From: Oopsacas minuta
Lineage: Eukaryota; Animalia; Porifera
DNA: 64,000 bases
Assembly (NCBI GenBank): GCA_024704765.1
Contig: JAKMXF010000144.1
Location: 124,001 to 188,000 of the forward strand
Direction of reading: 5' to 3'
Numbering within the stretch: position 1 is the first letter of the stretch; each line of letters starts with the position of its first letter. A program made the position numbers and the translations under genes. Shown one piece after another: positions 40,233 to 51,600 of the stretch. The notes below the pieces were generated by a model. It was not told the origin of the DNA. It did no database searches and was given only the letters and a program-made list of their open reading frames with translations.

Positions 40233-43200
40233 TTACTTTATACACAAAATCCCACGTAATTTTGGTAGTTCCCTCTCCAATGCGTTGCCAAACGCGATGA
40301 CTGATTTCTTGGACGGACTCTGTTGATGGAGTTCCGGATTAAGGTGTGAAAATATTTCTGTTAGTCTGTCACTAAAACATTTGTCCTGTGTGTCGAGTAT
40401 TCTTTGGATAATCTCGCTGTATGTAGTTGGATTTCCTAGCACGAGGTAGAAAAGTGTCTCAGCTGCCGATGAGACAAGGTCCATGTCAAAATTCTCATCA
40501 ATTAGAAACTTAAATATCACACTTAAAAGGTGCCGCAATTGTGTCGCCATAAGCTGAGTCAAATTCGATTGGTTTTGTTTACCGAAAATAGCGAGAGACG
40601 AAACAGCGTCTAGACAATACTTCCCAACATCTGAGTCATATTGGAACAGCCCAATTTCAAGGAGACTCGCTAAAGTGTGAAATACACCCATGGGGAGATT
40701 AGCTACCCTATCTGGATACGTTTCACAGATAAGTGTTAACAAATTAAAGAATTTATTGCATAAGGAAGGGTAGGATAAAAACTGTTTCGCCATAAAATGT
40801 AACACCACATCAAGACCATAAAACACTACATCGCCAGACTGGACCTTTGTAGAATTTGAGACAAAAGTCTCTTCGCTCAGTTCTACAAAATCCCACGACA
40901 TTAGAGATATCAAAATGTCCATAAGTTGTACCAAATCTGCATACCTGTCCTCCTCGAGATGGGGATGGCTCTGGATAGAGAGACCCTTATTCAGCGAACT
41001 GAACAGCTCGAGGACTTTAAGTGATAGATTATACATTTTGAAGAGTACAGGTTCTGAGAAATATGTGAGACAACTTTCTGCTATGTCCGCTAGAAGCGAT
41101 AGGAGGCTACTGACAATTTCTGGGGTTTTAAGACAGTCCGTTATTTGGTTAAGTGTCGCGAAAATCACCTCTAGAAAAGTGTCCGCTCGAGATGAAGGAC
41201 ACATTCTTGCGATACCAGACAGTGCGGATAATAGCGAATCAGTCTCTATGATTATATTTGCCATATTCGCATCTTTGGTCAACACGACTATGCGGGCACA
41301 AATTTGACCTATCACCTTTGAGTTCAAATCCTCCCAATTGTTCTTTGCCATGGATTTACCGATGAACCCAGCGAGTGACAATTGTACCTCTGGGGATAGC
41401 TTTTTCAGAACTTCAGCACCCGAACCGAATTGCTCCACCAATTCCCAAAACATGGGTCCTGAGGTGACAACTTTGTGTCGCTGTGGGGAACGAATCAATA
41501 TCGACAAAAGTTCTAAACTGTCGCTTTGGATTTGATCCTGTCCTGACCATTGATGGATATTACTGATTGCCTTCTCAACAAGGAAACTCAACAACGAATT
41601 GGAATGCATACCATCTCCACTGAATGAATCCTGCCATACGCCACTTGTGTCTTCATAATCCGACACATTATAGAACAAATATGGTTGTGACCAGTGTAAG
41701 AAGAACCACATGATGTCGCTTGCCACCTGAGGGCTCAATTTTAGCATTTGTCCGGATTTTATCAAAAGCGTTTCAACTTTCGCCCACTTGCACATAATCA
41801 CTACAATTCGTATAATTGGATCAAATTCGGTTTGATCGGTATTACTTGATTGTAGCTCAATTAATTGTGGCCAATTAGTGGCAGAGTGGACACTAGATTG
41901 GACAGAAAACGAATATTTTCGGATTTCGCTTGGAATTTGAACTTCTTCCCCTTCCGCAATGTCGACACAAATATGCCCGATAAGTAGAATCAGCCAATGA
42001 AAGTCCTCAAAAAGGCTCACTGGTACTTTATCACCTTGACCGACAAAATTCAAAATCTGATCGCCACATTTCTCAAGCAGCTCGCATGCCATTGGTAGAG
42101 CATTTGAGCAAATGGTACGAGCTATGGTTGCGATGGAACTCAGGTGTTCGATGAAAATATCCCGGTCATCCTCTTCCAACTCATCAATTTCTTTCGGTTC
42201 TGTCGAATCCTGCGCTGGCCTAGATCCGCCACTTAAGATTGTTAAGCGGAACTTTAAAAAGGCGCCAAACAGCTCTGGACCAATCACATTGAACCATCCA
42301 AGCGCGTAAATGTCCCCACCCATTTCACTCAAAAGTGTCACCCATGCCAATAAGAGTAGCTCAAACGCTTCTAAATATGGAGCGCCATCAACACCTAATG
42401 TGTCCTCTATTGTGGCTCTCTCAGCACAGTGTATCGTCAGTTTTGCTAGACCTCTTAGAAATGACTCAACAACTTCTTGCCGAATATTTGCGAAAAGTCG
42501 GATAGGGAAAGATGACATCATTTGACTTATGACACCAGCAAAACCAGCGGTTTCTTGAGGTGTCAATTCAAATTGTGTCGCGAATTCCAGGAAATTCTCA
42601 ATGAACTTTTTTAGATATTCGGATTTGTCACTATCATCCCCAAACACTTCTCCGTTAAGCGATGCCATCTGGATGAAACATAAAAGTGTCAGCTGACACA
42701 ATGATTCAACATTCCTGGTTTCCCCATGGATACGATATAGCAGATGAAGAATGCTACCGTCTAGCAATATATCCTTCCACTCGTTGGGGGGCTTGAATGC
42801 GATCGCTTGGACCCCGGTTTTGAAGAGATTCATGGTGGCAGATTTTGTCACGTTAGGTGTGAAATTCCAAGTGACAACATGGTTTAAAATATTCAAAGAT
42901 TTGGACAAAATCTCATTTCTCATATTTCCTTGGGATAATTGTTCTGACAATTTTTTCAAAAAATTCAGGTTTATAACGCAAAATTTTAACATATAATATT
43001 TTTCAAAAACCACTTTACACCTGAGATGTATTTCCCATGGCATGCCAAATCGAGATGAATGTGCCAACGAGCCAAATTCCACCATCAAGCTGACAATACT
43101 CGAGCAGGACACTAAATTGTAATGTGGTGCTGTGTCACTTATTAGTGACTCAAGACGTTGACATAATTTATCCAATAATGTGTTTTCTGGTTTGGCGATT

Positions 43201-43631
43201 TTTGTCATGTTTTCAATTTCGTTGTCACCTCCTCCTGGCGCCGAAATATCATCAATTAGCTTCCGTTTGATAAGTACCGACACTGCAAGGATCAGCTGTT
43301 CGCGTACATAATTCTCAATTTTATTTTGCGACAATAAGAATGCCATCAAATAGGAGAGCAGCTCCTCCAAGCCACTTTCCGTCACAATAACCCACTTCCT
43401 GACCATATGCTCGATCATAGCCGATACCGCTTCAAACTGGACAAGTGGCACTTCAGTATTTTCTAACACATATTTACAAAGTGGCAGTGGATCAGCGAGC
43501 CCTCGTAACTGCACGAATTTTTTCTCTTGCAATTTCCTTTCATCGTTCGATATTATTTCTGGACCTGCCAACAATTTTTTGGCGGAGGCATTCAATTCGT
43601 GAAGAAGGTGTTTGCACTGAAATTCATCCAT
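40233..43631 (-). CDS. XPO4: Exportin-4, intronless, 1132 aa
   Basis: CKYVLENT..LVQFEA, YVREQLILAVSVLIKR, FGMPWEIHLRCKVVFE, FEDFHWLILLIGH, YPSLCNKFFNLLTLICE. Confidence 0.9.
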   Translation of the reverse strand: MDEFQCKHLLHELNASAKKLLAGPEIISNDERKLQEKKFVQLRGLADPLPLCKYVLENTEVPLVQFEAVSAMIEHMVRKWVIVTESGLEELLSYLMAFLLSQNKIENYVREQLILAVSVLIKRKLIDDISAPGGGDNEIENMTKIAKPENTLLDKLCQRLESLISDTAPHYNLVSCSSIVSLMVEFGSLAHSSRFGMPWEIHLRCKVVFEKYYMLKFCVINLNFLKKLSEQLSQGNMRNEILSKSLNILNHVVTWNFTPNVTKSATMNLFKTGVQAIAFKPPNEWKDILLDGSILHLLYRIHGETRNVESLCQLTLLCFIQMASLNGEVFGDDSDKSEYLKKFIENFLEFATQFELTPQETAGFAGVISQMMSSFPIRLFANIRQEVVESFLRGLAKLTIHCAERATIEDTLGVDGAPYLEAFELLLLAWVTLLSEMGGDIYALGWFNVIGPELFGAFLKFRLTILSGGSRPAQDSTEPKEIDELEEDDRDIFIEHLSSIATIARTICSNALPMACELLEKCGDQILNFVGQGDKVPVSLFEDFHWLILLIGHICVDIAEGEEVQIPSEIRKYSFSVQSSVHSATNWPQLIELQSSNTDQTEFDPIIRIVVIMCKWAKVETLLIKSGQMLKLSPQVASDIMWFFLHWSQPYLFYNVSDYEDTSGVWQDSFSGDGMHSNSLLSFLVEKAISNIHQWSGQDQIQSDSLELLSILIRSPQRHKVVTSGPMFWELVEQFGSGAEVLKKLSPEVQLSLAGFIGKSMAKNNWEDLNSKVIGQICARIVVLTKDANMANIIIETDSLLSALSGIARMCPSSRADTFLEVIFATLNQITDCLKTPEIVSSLLSLLADIAESCLTYFSEPVLFKMYNLSLKVLELFSSLNKGLSIQSHPHLEEDRYADLVQLMDILISLMSWDFVELSEETFVSNSTKVQSGDVVFYGLDVVLHFMAKQFLSYPSLCNKFFNLLTLICETYPDRVANLPMGVFHTLASLLEIGLFQYDSDVGKYCLDAVSSLAIFGKQNQSNLTQLMATQLRHLLSVIFKFLIDENFDMDLVSSAAETLFYLVLGNPTTYSEIIQRILDTQDKCFSDRLTEIFSHLNPELHQQSPSKKSVIAFGNALERELPKLRGILCIK

Positions 43632-44385: not shown

Positions 44386-44689
44386 GAAGATATTCAATTA
44401 TTGCCCGCTGGTTTGTTTAGTAAAATGGGGGGTAACTTGTGGCTATATGGAATTCTCAATGTTTGAACATAAGTGGTATGAATAACGACAGTTTTGCAAA
44501 CAAATATATTTTCCAGACACATTTGTGGTTTCTGTACCCCGATATAGTTTAACATTCCAAATATGGTATATGGTTACCACCCAATTAGGGAGGAGATTAT
44601 AAAAGTAGGAATAATTATTATAATTTGACTTTTCCGCTTTTATACTTTTCCGTACGCCTACTTATAACTCTCGGTTTTGATTGGTTAGC

Positions 44690-46419
44690 ATGACTGACCG
44701 TCTGAAAAGTTTCAAGAACAAGGGTAGAGACGATGAAGCGGAGTTTAGACGTCGTAGGACAGAAGTTACAGTTGAGCTGCGAAGGAACAAACGCGACGAA
44801 CATCTTCAGAAGCGGCGTAACGTCCCCATAGATCATCAAGGAGACCTCCAGGTGGATACGTCAGTTGGCGGGTATGACTTTTCGTTCTCTGACGCTGGCC
44901 TAAATGAAGTGCGTGACAAACTAAGGGGTCTTGTTGTGAACGCACAATCAGAGGACCCTACCATAAAATTACAGGCGGTCCGTTCCGCTCGAAAGATCCT
45001 CAGTAAGGACAAGAATCCGCCAATTGATGAGCTCATAATATCTGGCATAGTTCCAGTACTGGTAAGTGTGACACAATTCATAGTTCCAGTTTTAAATATT
45101 TATTTATATTTCAAATATTTTCATATTATATAGGTGACATCACTGCGTTGTCATGACAACCCAAATATTCAGTTTGAAGCAGCTTGGGCACTAACTAATA
45201 TAGCAAGTGGTACATCTGAACAGACACGGGTGGTTGTACAATGTGGCGCTGTGCCACTTTTCATCGAATTATTATCATGCCCTATGCAGTATGTATGTGA
45301 ACAGGCTGTTTGGGCTCTCGGAAACATCACAGGGGATGGTCCAGAGTGTCGCGATTTTGTGATATCACATGGCATAATTCCACCACTTCTCACATTTATA
45401 AATCCACATACACCGATCTCATTCCTTAGGAATGTGACATGGACTATTTCTAATTTGTGTCGCAACAAAAATCCTCCACCACCTTTTGAATCTGTTTGTC
45501 AGTGCTTGCCTGCCCTTTTGGAACTAGTCAGACATGAAGATGTGGAGGTTAGTTCCCTATTATAACACCTTATATATATATATCTATAGTTTCAATTAAC
45601 TATCCTTGTGGTTCCATATTATAACACCTATTCTAGGTTAAGGTGGATGCTTGTTGGGCACTCTCTTTCCTGGCCGATGGATTACACGCTCAAATCCAAG
45701 TGGTTATCAATTCTGGTGTCATTCCCTTTCTCGTGCCACTTCTGGAACATCATGAGGTTAAAATTGTCATGCCAGCTTTAAGGACACTCGGGAATATCGT
45801 GACTGGAAGTGACGAACAGACACAAGTGGTTATTGACAATGGTATTCTACATAAACTACAATCTCTTCTCACTCACCACAAGGAGAACATTGTCAGAGAG
45901 GCCGTGTGGACCCTATCCAATATTACAGCCGGTTCAAGAGAACAGGTCCAAGCGGTCATTGATTCAGGTCTCATCCCCCCACTTGTTGAGGTGTTAGGTA
46001 ACGGGGAGTTCAAAACCCAGAAGGAGGCGGCATGGGCTGTGTCCAATTTCACAGTTGGTGGCACACCTGACCAGATAAAATACCTAGTGTCACAAAAAGC
46101 CATCTCTCCCTTATGCTCACTCTTAGAAGTGAAAGACTCCCAGGTTATACAAGTGGTTCTAGATGGCCTCCTCAACATCCTACGTCACTCCAGCGAAGAG
46201 CAGATCAACGTGGTAAATTCTATAGAAGAATCTGGTGGCTTAAACACTATTGAACTCTTGCAGCGACACAATTCACCAGTCATCTACCAACTGGCTTATA
46301 CCATTATCGATCAATATTTCCCAAGTGATGATGAAATTGGTGGTTTGGCGCCTGACGGAGGTGACAATCAATACCTCTTTAATGTGCAACATGGACAGTA
46401 CATGAATTTTCAGTTCTAG
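44690..46419 (+). CDS. KPNA4: Importin alpha, alpha3 clade (KPNA3/4-like), full length, 3 exons
   Basis: Exons 44690-45061, 45134-45547, 45637-46419. [40 protein letters not shown]; ARM motifs [33 protein letters not shown]. Confidence 0.95.
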
Positions 46420-46956
46420 GTGTGAAAAAGTGTCGCGATGTGAGAGAGCAAAGTCTGATGTGAACCAATAAGTGTCCTATTGTGTCAGACTAATTTGATA
46501 ATTATGTTTACATATAAATAAACCAGTTCCCATTTCAACCAATGAGGTTCTGTGCTATTTTAGTTACATCAGATATAATAGAATATAACATTCCAATCTA
46601 TCTTACATTAGCAACCGATTTATGGGGTAATTCAAGCTATTTTTGTTTGTATATTCGGCGACACAATTTTCACACCTTTTGCCAATATCTCAAAGGTTTC
46701 GATTCGATGGTTAATTTCAAATCTCAGATATATAGAATAACATTCCGATTATCGTATGTGGTTACCACATAAAGTATAAAAGTATAAGAATTGTTATAAT
46801 TCGAATTTTCCGCTTTTATACTTTCTATACACCTACTTAGAACCCTCTGTTTTGATTGGTTGCAGACCCTAAGTAACAGAAGTGGGACGAAACAAACTTA
46901 ACGGACATCTTCAGAAACGGCGTAACATACCCATTGATAATCAAGGCGACTAATAT

Positions 46957-48458
46957 ATGGATGTGTCAGCTGGAGGACACGACTCTGCCACTTCGGAAGT
47001 TAATCTGAATAAGTTATGTGATAAACTAAGGTGTCTTATTGTGACCGCTCAATCAGACGATCAAATAGCGCAATTAGAAGCGATCCGTTCCGCTCGAAAG
47101 CTCCTCAGTAAGGAAAATGCACTAATCGATGAATTCATTAAATCTGGCATAGTTCCAATACTGGTGAGTGTAACACATTCATAGTTCCTGTTTCAAATGT
47201 TTATTCATATTTTATAGGTGGAATCACTACGTTGTCATGACAACCCAAATATTCAGTTAGAAGTAACCTGGGCACTAACTAATATAACAAGTGGTACTTC
47301 TCAACAAACACGTGTGGTGATAGAATGTGGCGCTGTGCCACTTCTAATCGAATTATTGTCATCTCTCAATCAGGACTTATGTGAACAAGCTGTTTGGGCT
47401 CTCGGTAACATAGCAGCTGATAACCCAGAGTGTCGCGATCTTGTGATATCACATGGCATAATTCCACCACTTCTCATATTTATAAATCCACATACACCGA
47501 TCTCATTCCTTAGGAATGTGACAAGGACTATTTGTATTTTGTGTCGCAACAAAAATCCTCCACCACCTTTTGAATCTGTTTGTAAGTTTCTGCCTTTCCT
47601 TTTGGAACTAGTCAGACATGAATATAATGAAGTTAGTTTCATTTAATATTCTTATAGTTCCAGATTATAAACCTATTCTAGGTTAAAGCGGATGCTTGTT
47701 GGGCGCTCTTTTTCCTGTCTGATGGATTAGACGTTCAAATGCAAGTGGTTATCAATTCTGGTATCATTCCCTTTCTCGTGCCACTTCTGGAACATCATGA
47801 GGTCAAAATTGTCATGCCAGCTTTAAGGACACTCGGGAATATCGTGACTGGAAGTGACGAACAGACACAAGTGGTTATTGACAATGGTATTCTACATAAA
47901 CTACAATCTCTTCTCACTCACCACGAAGAGAACATTGTCAGAGAGGCCGTGTGGACCCTAACCAACATCACAGTAGGTTCGAAGGAACAGGTCCAAGCGG
48001 TCATTGATTCAGGTCTCATCCCCCCACTTGTCAAATTGTTAGGTAACGAAGAGTTTATTATATTGAAGCATGCCGCAGAGGCTGTGTCCAATTTCACATT
48101 TTCTGGCACACCTAACCAGATAAAATACCTAGTGTCACAAGAAGCCATCCCTCCCTTATGCTCACTCTTAGAAGTGAATGACTTGGAGGTTATACAAGTG
48201 GTCCTAGAAGGCCTCCTTAATATCCTACGTCACTCCGGTGAGGAGCAGATCAAGGTGGTAAATTCTATAGAAGAATCTGGTGGCTTAAACACTATTGAAA
48301 ACTTGCAGCTACACGATTCACCAGATATCAACGAACCGGCTAATACCATTATCGATCAATATTTCCCAGGCGGTGATGGAATTGATGGTTTGGCGCCTGA
48401 CGGAGGTAACAATCAATACTTCTTGCAACATGGAGAGTACATGAATTTTCATTTCTAG
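46957..48458 (+). CDS. Tandem importin alpha3 paralogue lacking the IBB domain (465 aa; functional gene or young pseudogene)
   Basis: Exons 46957-47163, 47218-47631, 47682-48458 are open and in phase. The original ATG and about 70 bp are deleted, an in-frame TAA sits at 46951-46953, and the ATG at 46957 corresponds to GTG in copy 1. Confidence 0.75.
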
Positions 48459-48620
48459 GTGTCAAAAGTGTCACATGACTAACCTTTTATATATTAATAT
48501 TTGTGACAAATATTTTTCAAATATCAAACACTGCGTGTCTGCAGGGTCTCATTTTTATTTTGCAGGTTGTAACCTTTTTGCTTATTTATTTTTGTGATTC
48601 ATTTTAGTTAATATTCTAGC

Positions 48621-51600
48621 ATGTCAAACTGCCCAAGATGTGGTAAACCAGTTTTCTTCGGTTTGTTTGTTTATTTGTTTGGTAAATATGAATATTTTAT
48701 GAAAGTCCCTTTCGGGAGCCCTTGAAACACCGTGATCCCCTGGGTGTTTGCGAATGACCTTGTGGTGCTGTATCTCTATGTAATTAGAATAATACTTGAT
48801 AGTTCCATATATAACAATAAAATATGAAAATGTATCGGTTGTGTTTTAACCATTATCTTATGAATTTCTCTTTGATTTCTAACTTTTATGTTTCTTTTTG
48901 TTATTCTACCTTTGAATTACCACTTTTGGTTATTTACATATTTCTGTCTGAAAGATAAGAACCACTTTTGTCACTTTGATGTTTCATACAATATTCATTT
49001 ATTGATTTGATTACAGTTTTAATGAAAGTTATTTGGCGCTTGAATTATCTATACCCCGCATTCCCCCGCTTAAATCTTACATCTCTCCCCTAAGCACATT
49101 ATTTACGCGCCTTTAATCCAATTTCTTTTAGCTGAGCGAAGACAATCATTGGGCAAGCATTGGCACCCTTGGTGTCTAAAATGTGAACTATGTGGCAAGA
49201 CACTAAATCCATCTCGACATTCCGAGGTAACCATGACAACCATTGAAATATTAATCATATATTGTAACCATAGCGACCATTAAACTATTTTATTCTATTT
49301 TTAGCATAAAGGTATGCCATATTGTGATGTGCCATGTTATAGTGCTTTATTTGGGCCAGGTGGCTTTGGGCGAGGTGGCACAGAATCTCACAAGGTGTTT
49401 GGATGTGTCGAGGACCTTGATAAGAAGACACATAGGTGGTGGTTTGTGGATATTAACACTTTAATGATACTTTTTATGACAATTTTTGTTATTTTTAGAA
49501 ATGAATTGATTCGGAAACTCAAGCTTTACAATGCAACACTAGCAAATTCAAAATTAACACTTAACTATTCAGAGGTAGCGACACATTAGTGCCACTTAAC
49601 ACCTTTGCCAAGGATTGTAGCACAAATATTTTACCATAAGTCCCCACTCAGATGGCTGGCGACACTTTTATGCCATTTAATCATGGTGTATTCGTATTCA
49701 TTTTATTCATAAACTGAGAGTAAAACTTCACAAAATTCGGTATTCATATATTTCATAATTCACACCTCTCCACACTATTAACATATTTGCAATCTAATCT
49801 TGATTGGATTTTGAGCGCTGAAATATTCATTTAACACTTCGGTGGAAAATTTCTAACATTCCTGTAAACCTTAAATATTTCGGTGAATTCCTTTTAAGCA
49901 TTTCTGTTGTTATGCATTTTTCATTTGATCATGTGTGTTTACACATCAATTTGATTCGTCGATTAGAGGTCCAATTATAGCATCTGTATATGGAAATTGT
50001 GTCACAAATGTGTCATATTGTGTCCTTAACATGAAGTTATAAAGTTTGAAGTATTCGCATAATTATTATTCCATTATATCCATTAGTAATGTGTCGCCAT
50101 TCAATTGGACATATGTTACATTCCAAATGACCTTCCATGTTACCATTCAAATTTCTTTTACAGTTGTATTGCCTCGTAGTTGGACAGGTTAAAGGGGTCT
50201 CTTGGTTCTGAAAGACCGCTTTTATGATTGTTATCCAAATTCCGTTAGCTAAAATTGGCCCAATTAAGCGTTGTCCCCTGTATTATATATATTTTCACAC
50301 CTTTTGCAACTTCAGGCTAACCATGAGGTATTCTATGAAGGAGTTCTGCGTATTCATTGGCTGGTTAAGAAGCCAATCAAATTGCTGCGAAGATCTTCAC
50401 TTGTACCTCAAAACTATAAGAAGACCAATCAACAAAAGGTGTGAATTCTTATTTGGCCCTTCAGGGGGGCGAGGGGGCTTATTCAGATGGCAAATTGGTC
50501 CTACTTTGAACCTCATAAGGCAGACTATTAATTAGTTAATTAGATTAGCTAATTTAATAAAATTATTATCTCCTAATAATTCCTTGTAATTACATTCCAT
50601 CAGTTCTCTAAGGTAACTAAGATAATTTCGTCACCTGTGAAGATGAGTTCTCCTTCACCTGAGCAGAAAACAAGAATGAGACTCAAGACGAGTGGATTCT
50701 CATTGGTCAGACATATCCCAGAGCCACATTTCAATTGCCAGGTTAGGTGTGAATGTGGCATAAATGTGTCGCATTTGTATTGTGTCGTTCAGCTATCTCT
50801 CAGAATTGGGTAATCAAGTTGGCATTTGAATGATGTCGCAATCAAATGAATGGCAGCCTTATGGCGACACATTTACGACACAATTGTGACACAATGGTTT
50901 CTAAATTTGATGTGAAATCGTATTAGAATGCAAACTATGAATAATTCACATTTTGTTGTTCTTGAAAAGTAAACAATTATTGGTAATTGTGTTTGTTTAT
51001 TTATAGTCAGAATTATTTACACCTGACGAAACAATAATAACAAATGTGTTTACTACTGGTGTCGCTAAATCACATGAAGTATTGACACAAATATTCAAGA
51101 AATATCAGGTTGTTTGTTTATTTGTTTGTTTGTTTATTTGTTTGTTTGTTTGTTTGTTTGTTTGTGTGTTTAGATAGCAGATTCTTCTTCAGAATTTATC
51201 CTATGTGTCAGCTATGATAACGGAGGTGATTACTAGCATAGGTGTCAAAATAGTGACACATGTTATATATATTTTGTGTAGATGGTTTTTTGTCTGGAAT
51301 TGATTGAGGAACTGGTAAGAGCTACGAACTTGAAATATGGCATGAGTGTGGAATGTGATTAATCTTGGAACCATTTCTAATATCTAAGCGATATCTCATA
51401 AACCCTCTGAGATAGGTGTCAAATGTATTGACCGATCAGGTTCTTGGTTTTTACCAATTGTGCACACAAGAAAGTAAAGCTTGCTTGTATATTTCATACG
51501 CCACTTTAATGCCATAAATACGCCACTTTAATGCCATATATCAGCTACTTAGCGACACATTTAAAATATTTGTTCTATGCGAATCTTTACTGATACATCA

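Follow-up and report, generated by a model that had tools for sequence, protein, structure and literature searches.

What becomes of an importin-alpha gene that has lost the domain through which its product would engage importin-beta, while the rest of its reading frame stays open? The question is raised by a tandem pair of genes in the glass sponge Oopsacas minuta, located in a stretch of 64,000 nucleotides (GenBank assembly GCA_024704765.1, contig JAKMXF010000144.1, positions 124,001 to 188,000 of the forward strand) that is called the window below and to which all coordinates refer. Copy 1 (44690..46419, plus strand) is a canonical importin-alpha3-type gene with three exons and 522 amino acids. 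Copy 2, directly downstream, encodes 465 amino acids in a frame free of internal stops, with armadillo (ARM) repeats and without the importin-beta-binding (IBB) domain. On balance, copy 2 is probably a retained, fast-evolving IBB-less importin-alpha paralogue that would bind basic motifs through a partly rebuilt groove, outside the importin-beta cycle. A sequence-only reading of the locus had proposed a non-importing scaffold or decoy, or else an early pseudogene; the data now favor a retained IBB-less coding paralogue but do not settle the matter, because its rate of protein change is close to neutral, changes are not enriched at cargo-contact residues, and one index search gave no RNA run with copy 2.

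Structure and origin of the second copy

Copy 1 consists of exon 1 (44690-45061; IBB, linker, and ARM1), exon 2 (45134-45547; ARM2-4), and exon 3 (45637-46419; ARM5-10 and tail), and its best natural relative of solved structure (PDB) is importin-alpha3. Pairwise alignment of the two units, with statistics for each region, places the second of the two tandem units at 46740..48480 (plus strand), homologous to approximately 44540-46440; the homology runs from about 125 bp 5' of the old start codon to about 20 bp beyond the stop. Within it, copy 2 has an exon 1 of 69 codons with a new start codon (GTG to ATG), the linker, and ARM1 (46957..47163), an exon 2 of 138 codons with ARM2-4 (47218..47631), and an exon 3 of 258 codons plus stop with ARM5-10 and the tail (47682..48458), all on the plus strand. 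The four introns of the two copies are all in phase 0 and bounded by GT..AG, in line with the intact splice sites that the sequence-only reading had described for copy 2. Searches were run exon by exon. Pfam identifies the IBB domain in exon 1 of copy 1 (E 1e-20) and finds no match to it (PF01749) in exon 1 of copy 2; Arm (E 3e-27 and 4e-38) and Arm_3 (E 1e-14) are both matched in copy 2, as they are in copy 1, the Arm_3 score being 53.9 bits in copy 2 versus 63.5 in copy 1.

The arrangement of the exons also allows for a transcript in which exon 1 of copy 1, with its IBB domain, is spliced to exon 2 of copy 2, so that exons 2 and 3 of copy 2 would serve as alternative 3' modules with an altered cargo groove. 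The uniform intron phase would keep such a splice in frame, and the two genes are co-oriented, 440 bp apart, in a dense run of plus-strand genes. We nevertheless regard this read-through as very improbable: exon 1 of copy 2 has been preserved together with a donor site and an in-frame ATG of its own, though none of these would be needed, and an AATAAA can be read in the sequence about 100 nt past the stop codon of copy 1.

The loss of the IBB domain can be followed base by base. Alignment to copy 1 confirms that about 70 bp including the start codon have been deleted from the IBB coding region of copy 2 (58 + 12 = 70 nt). What is left of that region, the IBB remnant (46867..46956, plus strand), is presumably now 5' untranslated sequence; it contains no ATG and two in-frame TAA codons, one at 46951-46953, which had been noticed before, and a second at 46870-46872 in place of one Arg codon of an RRRR cluster. 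Its Jukes-Cantor distance from copy 1 (0.36) is about the neutral expectation since the duplication. The only ATG within 46780-46960 is that at 46957, which is in frame with the ARM body and aligns with position 55 of copy 1; translation of copy 2 is thus predicted to start only there, 3' of the destroyed IBB domain. This ATG arose from GTG inside a 9-nt patch (46948-46959) in which seven bases differ (CTCCAGGTG in copy 1 versus TAATATATG in copy 2). The patch creates both the TAA at 46951 and the ATG at 46957, and it looks like the product of a single complex mutational event and not of independent point changes. The sequence-only reading was right that 46957 is the first available AUG, but its retained splice acceptor is not supported: the hexamer ttgcag (46861-46866) cannot be called one, because it straddles no conserved AG in the four orthologues and lies where the deletion joins the flanking sequence.

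Those orthologues come from related loci recovered as exon-sized reading frames in four European Nucleotide Archive assemblies. Three motifs that are conserved 5' of them are also retained upstream of copy 2 (46775..46859, plus strand): TATAAAAG at 46775-46782, CGCTTTTATAC at 46811-46821, and GATTGG at 46854-46859. The same set occurs at 44598-44689 and 46775-46866 in the window and upstream of the importin-alpha genes of loci L001, L005, L006, and L007, in species with saturated synonymous divergence; GATTGG is the motif that lies within 5-10 nt of the importin-alpha ATG. It is a candidate core promoter for the importin-alpha gene of glass sponges. An apparent excess of conserved upstream bases in copy 2 (P = 4e-4), which would have indicated promoter constraint, was rejected as an ascertainment artefact, because columns conserved in all orthologues exclude changes derived in copy 1; three changes in 43 such columns match the neutral expectation.

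Copy 2 derives from a lineage-specific tandem DNA duplication of the sponge importin-alpha3-type gene. In a codon tree it is sister to copy 1 with 100% support, and exons 2 and 3 of copy 1 are 93-99% identical to single-copy, XPO4-adjacent orthologues in the other assemblies. It is unprocessed, with the two introns of its parent and 125 bp of 5' flanking sequence kept in a tandem arrangement, features that do not fit retroposition. The order XPO4, one importin-alpha, LIM gene recurs in three species (L001/L002/L003; L005; L006) whose divergence from this genome is saturated at synonymous sites, and the importin stop lies just ~290-380 bp from the LIM start in the two in which the latter can be placed (L002, species A; L005, species B'). 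No second importin-alpha copy is present at this XPO4/importin-alpha/LIM locus in species A, B', or D; in species C only the XPO4/importin-alpha pair is seen (L007).

Synonymous divergence (dS) between the copies averages 0.23 and is uneven, ranging from 0.6-0.9 in exon 1 to about 0.04 in a near-identical tract at 47721..47945 (plus strand), which is a probable gene-conversion tract. The unevenness therefore points to gene conversion superimposed on an older duplication, and the two copies may still be exchanging tracts. Exon 1, the most diverged part of the copy 2 gene (dS 0.57), is still free of stops and carries a single 3-nt deletion. Hypermutation of copy 2, suggested by a nucleotide maximum-likelihood tree with a zero-length branch for copy 1, was rejected as a model artefact: by parsimony, purely synonymous codon differences are symmetric (11 versus 10), while amino-acid-changing differences fall about 10:1 on copy 2.

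The cargo groove

Importin-alpha binds nuclear localization signals (NLSs) at a major site (ARM2-4) and a minor site (ARM6-8), each canonically formed by Trp and Asn arrays with acidic residues, and this set is incomplete in copy 2. Mouse residue numbers were checked through alignment ranges to a full-length chain (3tpo_A), and the remaining W/N/D/G landmarks fall at the expected offsets. The four substitutions that had first drawn attention to the gene are all verified, both in position and in numbering: in ARM4, W to R at codon 47524 (W231R) and N to I at 47536 (N235I); in ARM8, E to H at 48069 (E396H) and W to E at 48078 (W399E). Four further contact residues are changed (A148T and G191A in exon 2, H283D and S360T in exon 3), and S234C (codon 47533) adjoins N235. 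In total, eight of 38 contact residues taken from the literature are altered. The other 30 are the same, among them W142, N146, G150, T155, W184, N188, D192, W273, R315, N319, W357, N361, and N403, so most of the groove survives; the statement that key residues of both NLS sites are lost is nevertheless true. By residue content, both sites are damaged and not erased.

The pockets are affected unequally. W231 and W184 form the P3 pocket, with N235 gripping the backbone of the NLS, and in the P2' pocket, lined by W357 and W399, the arginine is bound by E396 and S360 (PMC4474859, PMC3946659). The P2 lysine pocket of the major site (G150, T155, D192) is intact in copy 2, whereas P3 (W231, N235) and P2' (E396, W399, S360) would be rebuilt; since P2 is intact, some NLS binding by copy 2 is likely, and basic motifs would probably be bound with altered specificity and lower affinity. 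The description of the protein as non-importing is thereby left to depend on the loss of the IBB domain, without which the protein would be expected neither to bind importin-beta nor to carry the autoinhibitory KRR segment. With both absent, the NLS groove would always be open and would have no link to the classical import cycle. The product of copy 2 would then be no import adaptor; it may act as an importin-beta-independent binder, a sequestering factor, or a competitor for NLS-like cargo.

This architecture has a laboratory counterpart in engineered delta-IBB importin-alpha (mouse 70-529; human delta-IBB importin-alpha1; PMC4319847), of which copy 2, with ARM1-10 and no IBB domain, would be the natural equivalent. 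In the laboratory constructs every NLS pocket residue is retained, and NLSs are bound more tightly than by the full-length protein; copy 2 differs from them in W231R, N235I, E396H, W399E, and S360T and in an altered ARM10, whose last helix carries a cluster of substitutions, one of them to proline. Copy 2 shares the 10-ARM architecture and the C-terminal Arm_3 repeat of canonical importin-alpha3 (KPNA4/KPNA3 type), from which it is set apart by the absence of the IBB domain, by the replaced W/N/E positions in ARM4 and ARM8, and by its rate of protein evolution.

Selection on copy 2 and its present state

That rate was estimated as omega (dN/dS, the ratio of nonsynonymous to synonymous substitution rates) on concatenated exon alignments. 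Constraint on the orthologues and on copy 1 is very strong (background omega 0.02-0.05; 0.02 versus about 1 for canonical importin-alpha3 and copy 2), and the copy 2 branch differs from this background at P = 3e-60. Four independent features of copy 2 reject strict neutrality. First, no stop is found in 465 codons after about 150 copy-2-derived substitutions; in neutral simulations, 100-160 random substitutions placed in the ancestral frame produce 3.6-7.5 stops, and an open frame is reached with P = 0.0005-0.02. Second, the coding sequence has only two indels, both in frame, per 183 substitutions, whereas the noncoding remainder of the duplicated unit has 10-11 per 65 (Fisher P = 1e-4 to 4e-4). 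Third, amino acid changes avoid conserved positions, as defined by a panel of 66-91 distant importin-alphas: 27% of variable columns are changed versus 8.5-12.5% of moderately conserved ones (Fisher 4e-5). Shuffling within blocks of 10-40 codons, a control for conversion tracts, leaves this avoidance in place (P ~6e-4 to 1e-3); in the most conserved class the proportion rises again, to 19%, because the pocket residues belong to it. Fourth, the disabling lesions (one frameshifting deletion and two TAA codons) all lie in the IBB remnant and none in the exon 1 coding sequence or the remaining frame (Fisher 0.002 versus the whole coding sequence; 0.04 versus exon 1 alone). As the lesions are confined to a remnant whose divergence equals that of neutral sequence, the ARM frame must have been protected over a long time when decay of the IBB region was already free to proceed.

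These features bear directly on whether copy 2 is a long-dead pseudogene that has stayed open by chance or been repaired by conversion from copy 1. The patchy dS (0.04 to 0.9) and the near-identical tracts are signs of conversion between the copies. The sequenced sample also has a second haplotype, in which seven of the nine variants in the copy 2 unit (46747-47927) match the copy 1 base; the near-identical tract is 2 nt longer there (47925, 47927). The copy-1-like variants may be young derived alleles or segregating conversion tracts. The tests, however, are conditioned on visible differences, which conversion cannot have repaired: some 150 substitutions without a stop (P <= 0.02), two in-frame indels where about 20 would be expected, and avoidance of conserved columns even within 10-40-codon blocks. 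Long death is accordingly a very improbable account of this gene.

A younger or silent pseudogene is a more serious competitor, and we rate it as possible, though less probable than retention. The gene would have been functional and fast evolving through most of its existence and would now be dead or untranscribed, its ARM frame so far free of lesions. The branch omega is indistinguishable from 1; damage extends to the importin-beta, NLS, and ARM10 interfaces alike; no RNA run with copy 2 was found; data from a related organism hint that the start-codon deletion might be recent, with nearly no sequence there resembling the copy 2 body; and comparable copies in another sponge, species C, now evolve at omega ~1.2 with premature stops near the C-terminus. 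Set against this, the neutral-like IBB remnant has accumulated a frameshift and two stops while the equally old exon 1 coding sequence and remaining frame have none; the first AUG is the new in-frame ATG; and both haplotypes are open. In copy 2, the second haplotype shows two synonymous changes and a single codon difference (E/K); it has no indel, and its frame is open as well.

Several observations weigh against the retained-paralogue interpretation and are best considered together. The copy 2 branch omega does not differ from 1, whether branch lengths are free (0.87, P = 0.64) or a local clock gives both copies equal neutral length (1.26, P = 0.16). By the criterion that the sequence-only reading had set (dN/dS near 1 with randomly placed changes), an omega near 1 is what a pseudogene would show. 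Of the NLS-contact residues, 21% are changed, which is close to the neutral expectation and no enrichment relative to other positions (P = 0.66, or P = 0.14 when only conserved columns are compared), a pattern that looks like relaxation and not like directed remodeling. The substituted ARM10 helix faces CAS and Nup50 in canonical importin-alpha, so that all three classical interfaces are, judging from their residues, degraded. The selection tests address the history of copy 2 and not its present state. The retention of the three upstream motifs fits neutral drift; it shows no more than that a copy 2 promoter is still plausible, and the motifs could have survived by chance. One index search returned no RNA run with copy 2, only DNA-like runs (from the source sample and one related organism), a blank that is weak evidence. 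In that related organism (organism B, run X5; ~5% diverged), copy 1 is well covered and the copy 2 body hardly at all, and in one contig the flank upstream of copy 2 (46633-46777) continues into a 5' coding region (44602-44772) that is copy-1-like and undeleted. The contig represents either a second copy homogenized by conversion in organism B or a chimera, and it conflicts with the old age inferred for the loss of the IBB domain. Finally, word searches with exons 1, 2, and 3 in other data sets found no copy 2 orthologue: no protein was nearer to copy 2 than to copy 1, and exon 1 gave zero matches. This blank says little, because full-length proteins (465 or 522 amino acids) fall outside the length range of the longest query (258 aa x 1.75 = 451).

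Retention of copy 2 as a coding gene would accommodate the overall omega of about 1 as an average: selection would keep a 465-amino-acid IBB-less armadillo protein in which constrained fold positions are combined with surface positions that change freely or under selection. Positive selection itself receives no significant support, either from omega above 1 under the local clock (P = 0.16) or from a McDonald-Kreitman-type table (108:32 versus 1:2, P = 0.14). If copy 2 is instead a pseudogene, it is an ordinary decaying duplicate, and the lesson would be how long conversion-prone tandem copies look alive.

Parallels in sponges and flies, and the surrounding genes

A second case comes from species C (ERZ20067936), which has, in addition to the canonical XPO4-linked gene (L007), two importin-alpha3-derived copies, Ca and Cb, on another contig (L004:1727-2419 and L004:6949-10777), a non-syntenic locus. 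Their duplication took place within the species C lineage and is independent of copy 2 (100% support, codon tree). No IBB coding sequence was detectable at E <= 10 in the 7 kb searched upstream of Ca; the contig does not reach the 5' end of Cb. Ca and Cb resemble copy 2 in their alpha3-type origin; the Ca frame starts at the same linker position as that of copy 2, with M-D-V, and Cb carries W399R where copy 2 has W399E. They differ from copy 2 in being non-syntenic and older (dS 0.5-0.65) and in having a clearly constrained stem, with omega 0.24 (below 1, P = 0.044; above background, P = 5e-10). At the tips omega is ~1.2, and both frames lose their last 16-29 residues to stop codons.

It is in Drosophila that recurrent IBB-less importin-alpha duplicates have been described until now, and they are discussed there in connection with genetic conflict in the male germline. 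The fly genes alphaKap4, alphaKap5, alphaKap6, and alphaKap2A-H are for the most part retrogenes, whether full or partial, and are reported to be enriched in testis (Phadnis et al. 2012, as cited in Mirsalehi et al. 2021, PMC8645118); they originated repeatedly and independently, several of them from alpha3, evolve fast, and are proposed to function independently of importin-beta, possibly in relation to meiotic drive (PMC8645118). Copy 2 is like them a lineage-specific duplicate of a canonical importin-alpha that has kept its ARM repeats without the IBB domain, and on its predicted protein it falls within the structural definition of fly-type IBB-less paralogues. The routes differ: copy 2 is a tandem DNA duplicate with both introns and the parental promoter motifs that lost the IBB domain through deletion and nonsense codons, whereas the fly copies lost it through 5' truncation at retroposition. 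The fly precedent and the case of Ca and Cb both speak for the retention of copy 2. Sponges have no testis, and a germline parallel would have to be sought in spermatocysts or oocytes.

More tentatively, copy 2 and Ca/Cb raise the possibility that glass sponges repeatedly form and retain IBB-less importin-alpha3 paralogues as open, retuned cargo binders or sequestering factors outside the importin-beta cycle. If so, they would match, outside the bilaterians, the testis-specific alphaKaps of Drosophila. Importin-alpha genes in general, and not just those of flies, would then have gained new functions repeatedly by shedding the IBB domain, for example in gametogenesis, in syncytial tissue, or in conflicts with nuclear parasites. 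A retained sponge copy together with a second, independent case would place the same move at the base of the animals, brought about in another way, through tandem DNA duplication and subsequent decay of the 5' end. As a natural experiment on which pockets matter when importin-beta is not involved, the copy 2 protein would also be of use, since it would combine a lack of autoinhibition with an intact P2 pocket and with P3 and P2' pockets that have been rebuilt.

The surroundings of the pair hold a few further features. In the assembly that contains L006 (ERZ26869290), pieces of importin-alpha and XPO4 are repeated in inverted orientation (L006:1-8044), probably a fold-back or chimeric artefact of long-read assembly, and only the clean part was used. 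In the window, an intronless exportin-4 gene (XPO4; 40233-43631, minus strand) encoding 1132 amino acids lies head-to-head with copy 1, and a small LIM-type gene begins 3' of copy 2, its start codon at 48621. At 48615-48623 a ttctag directly precedes C and this ATG, and copy 1 likewise has ggttag before C ATG, so that an acceptor-before-ATG pattern is found at the starts of both genes.

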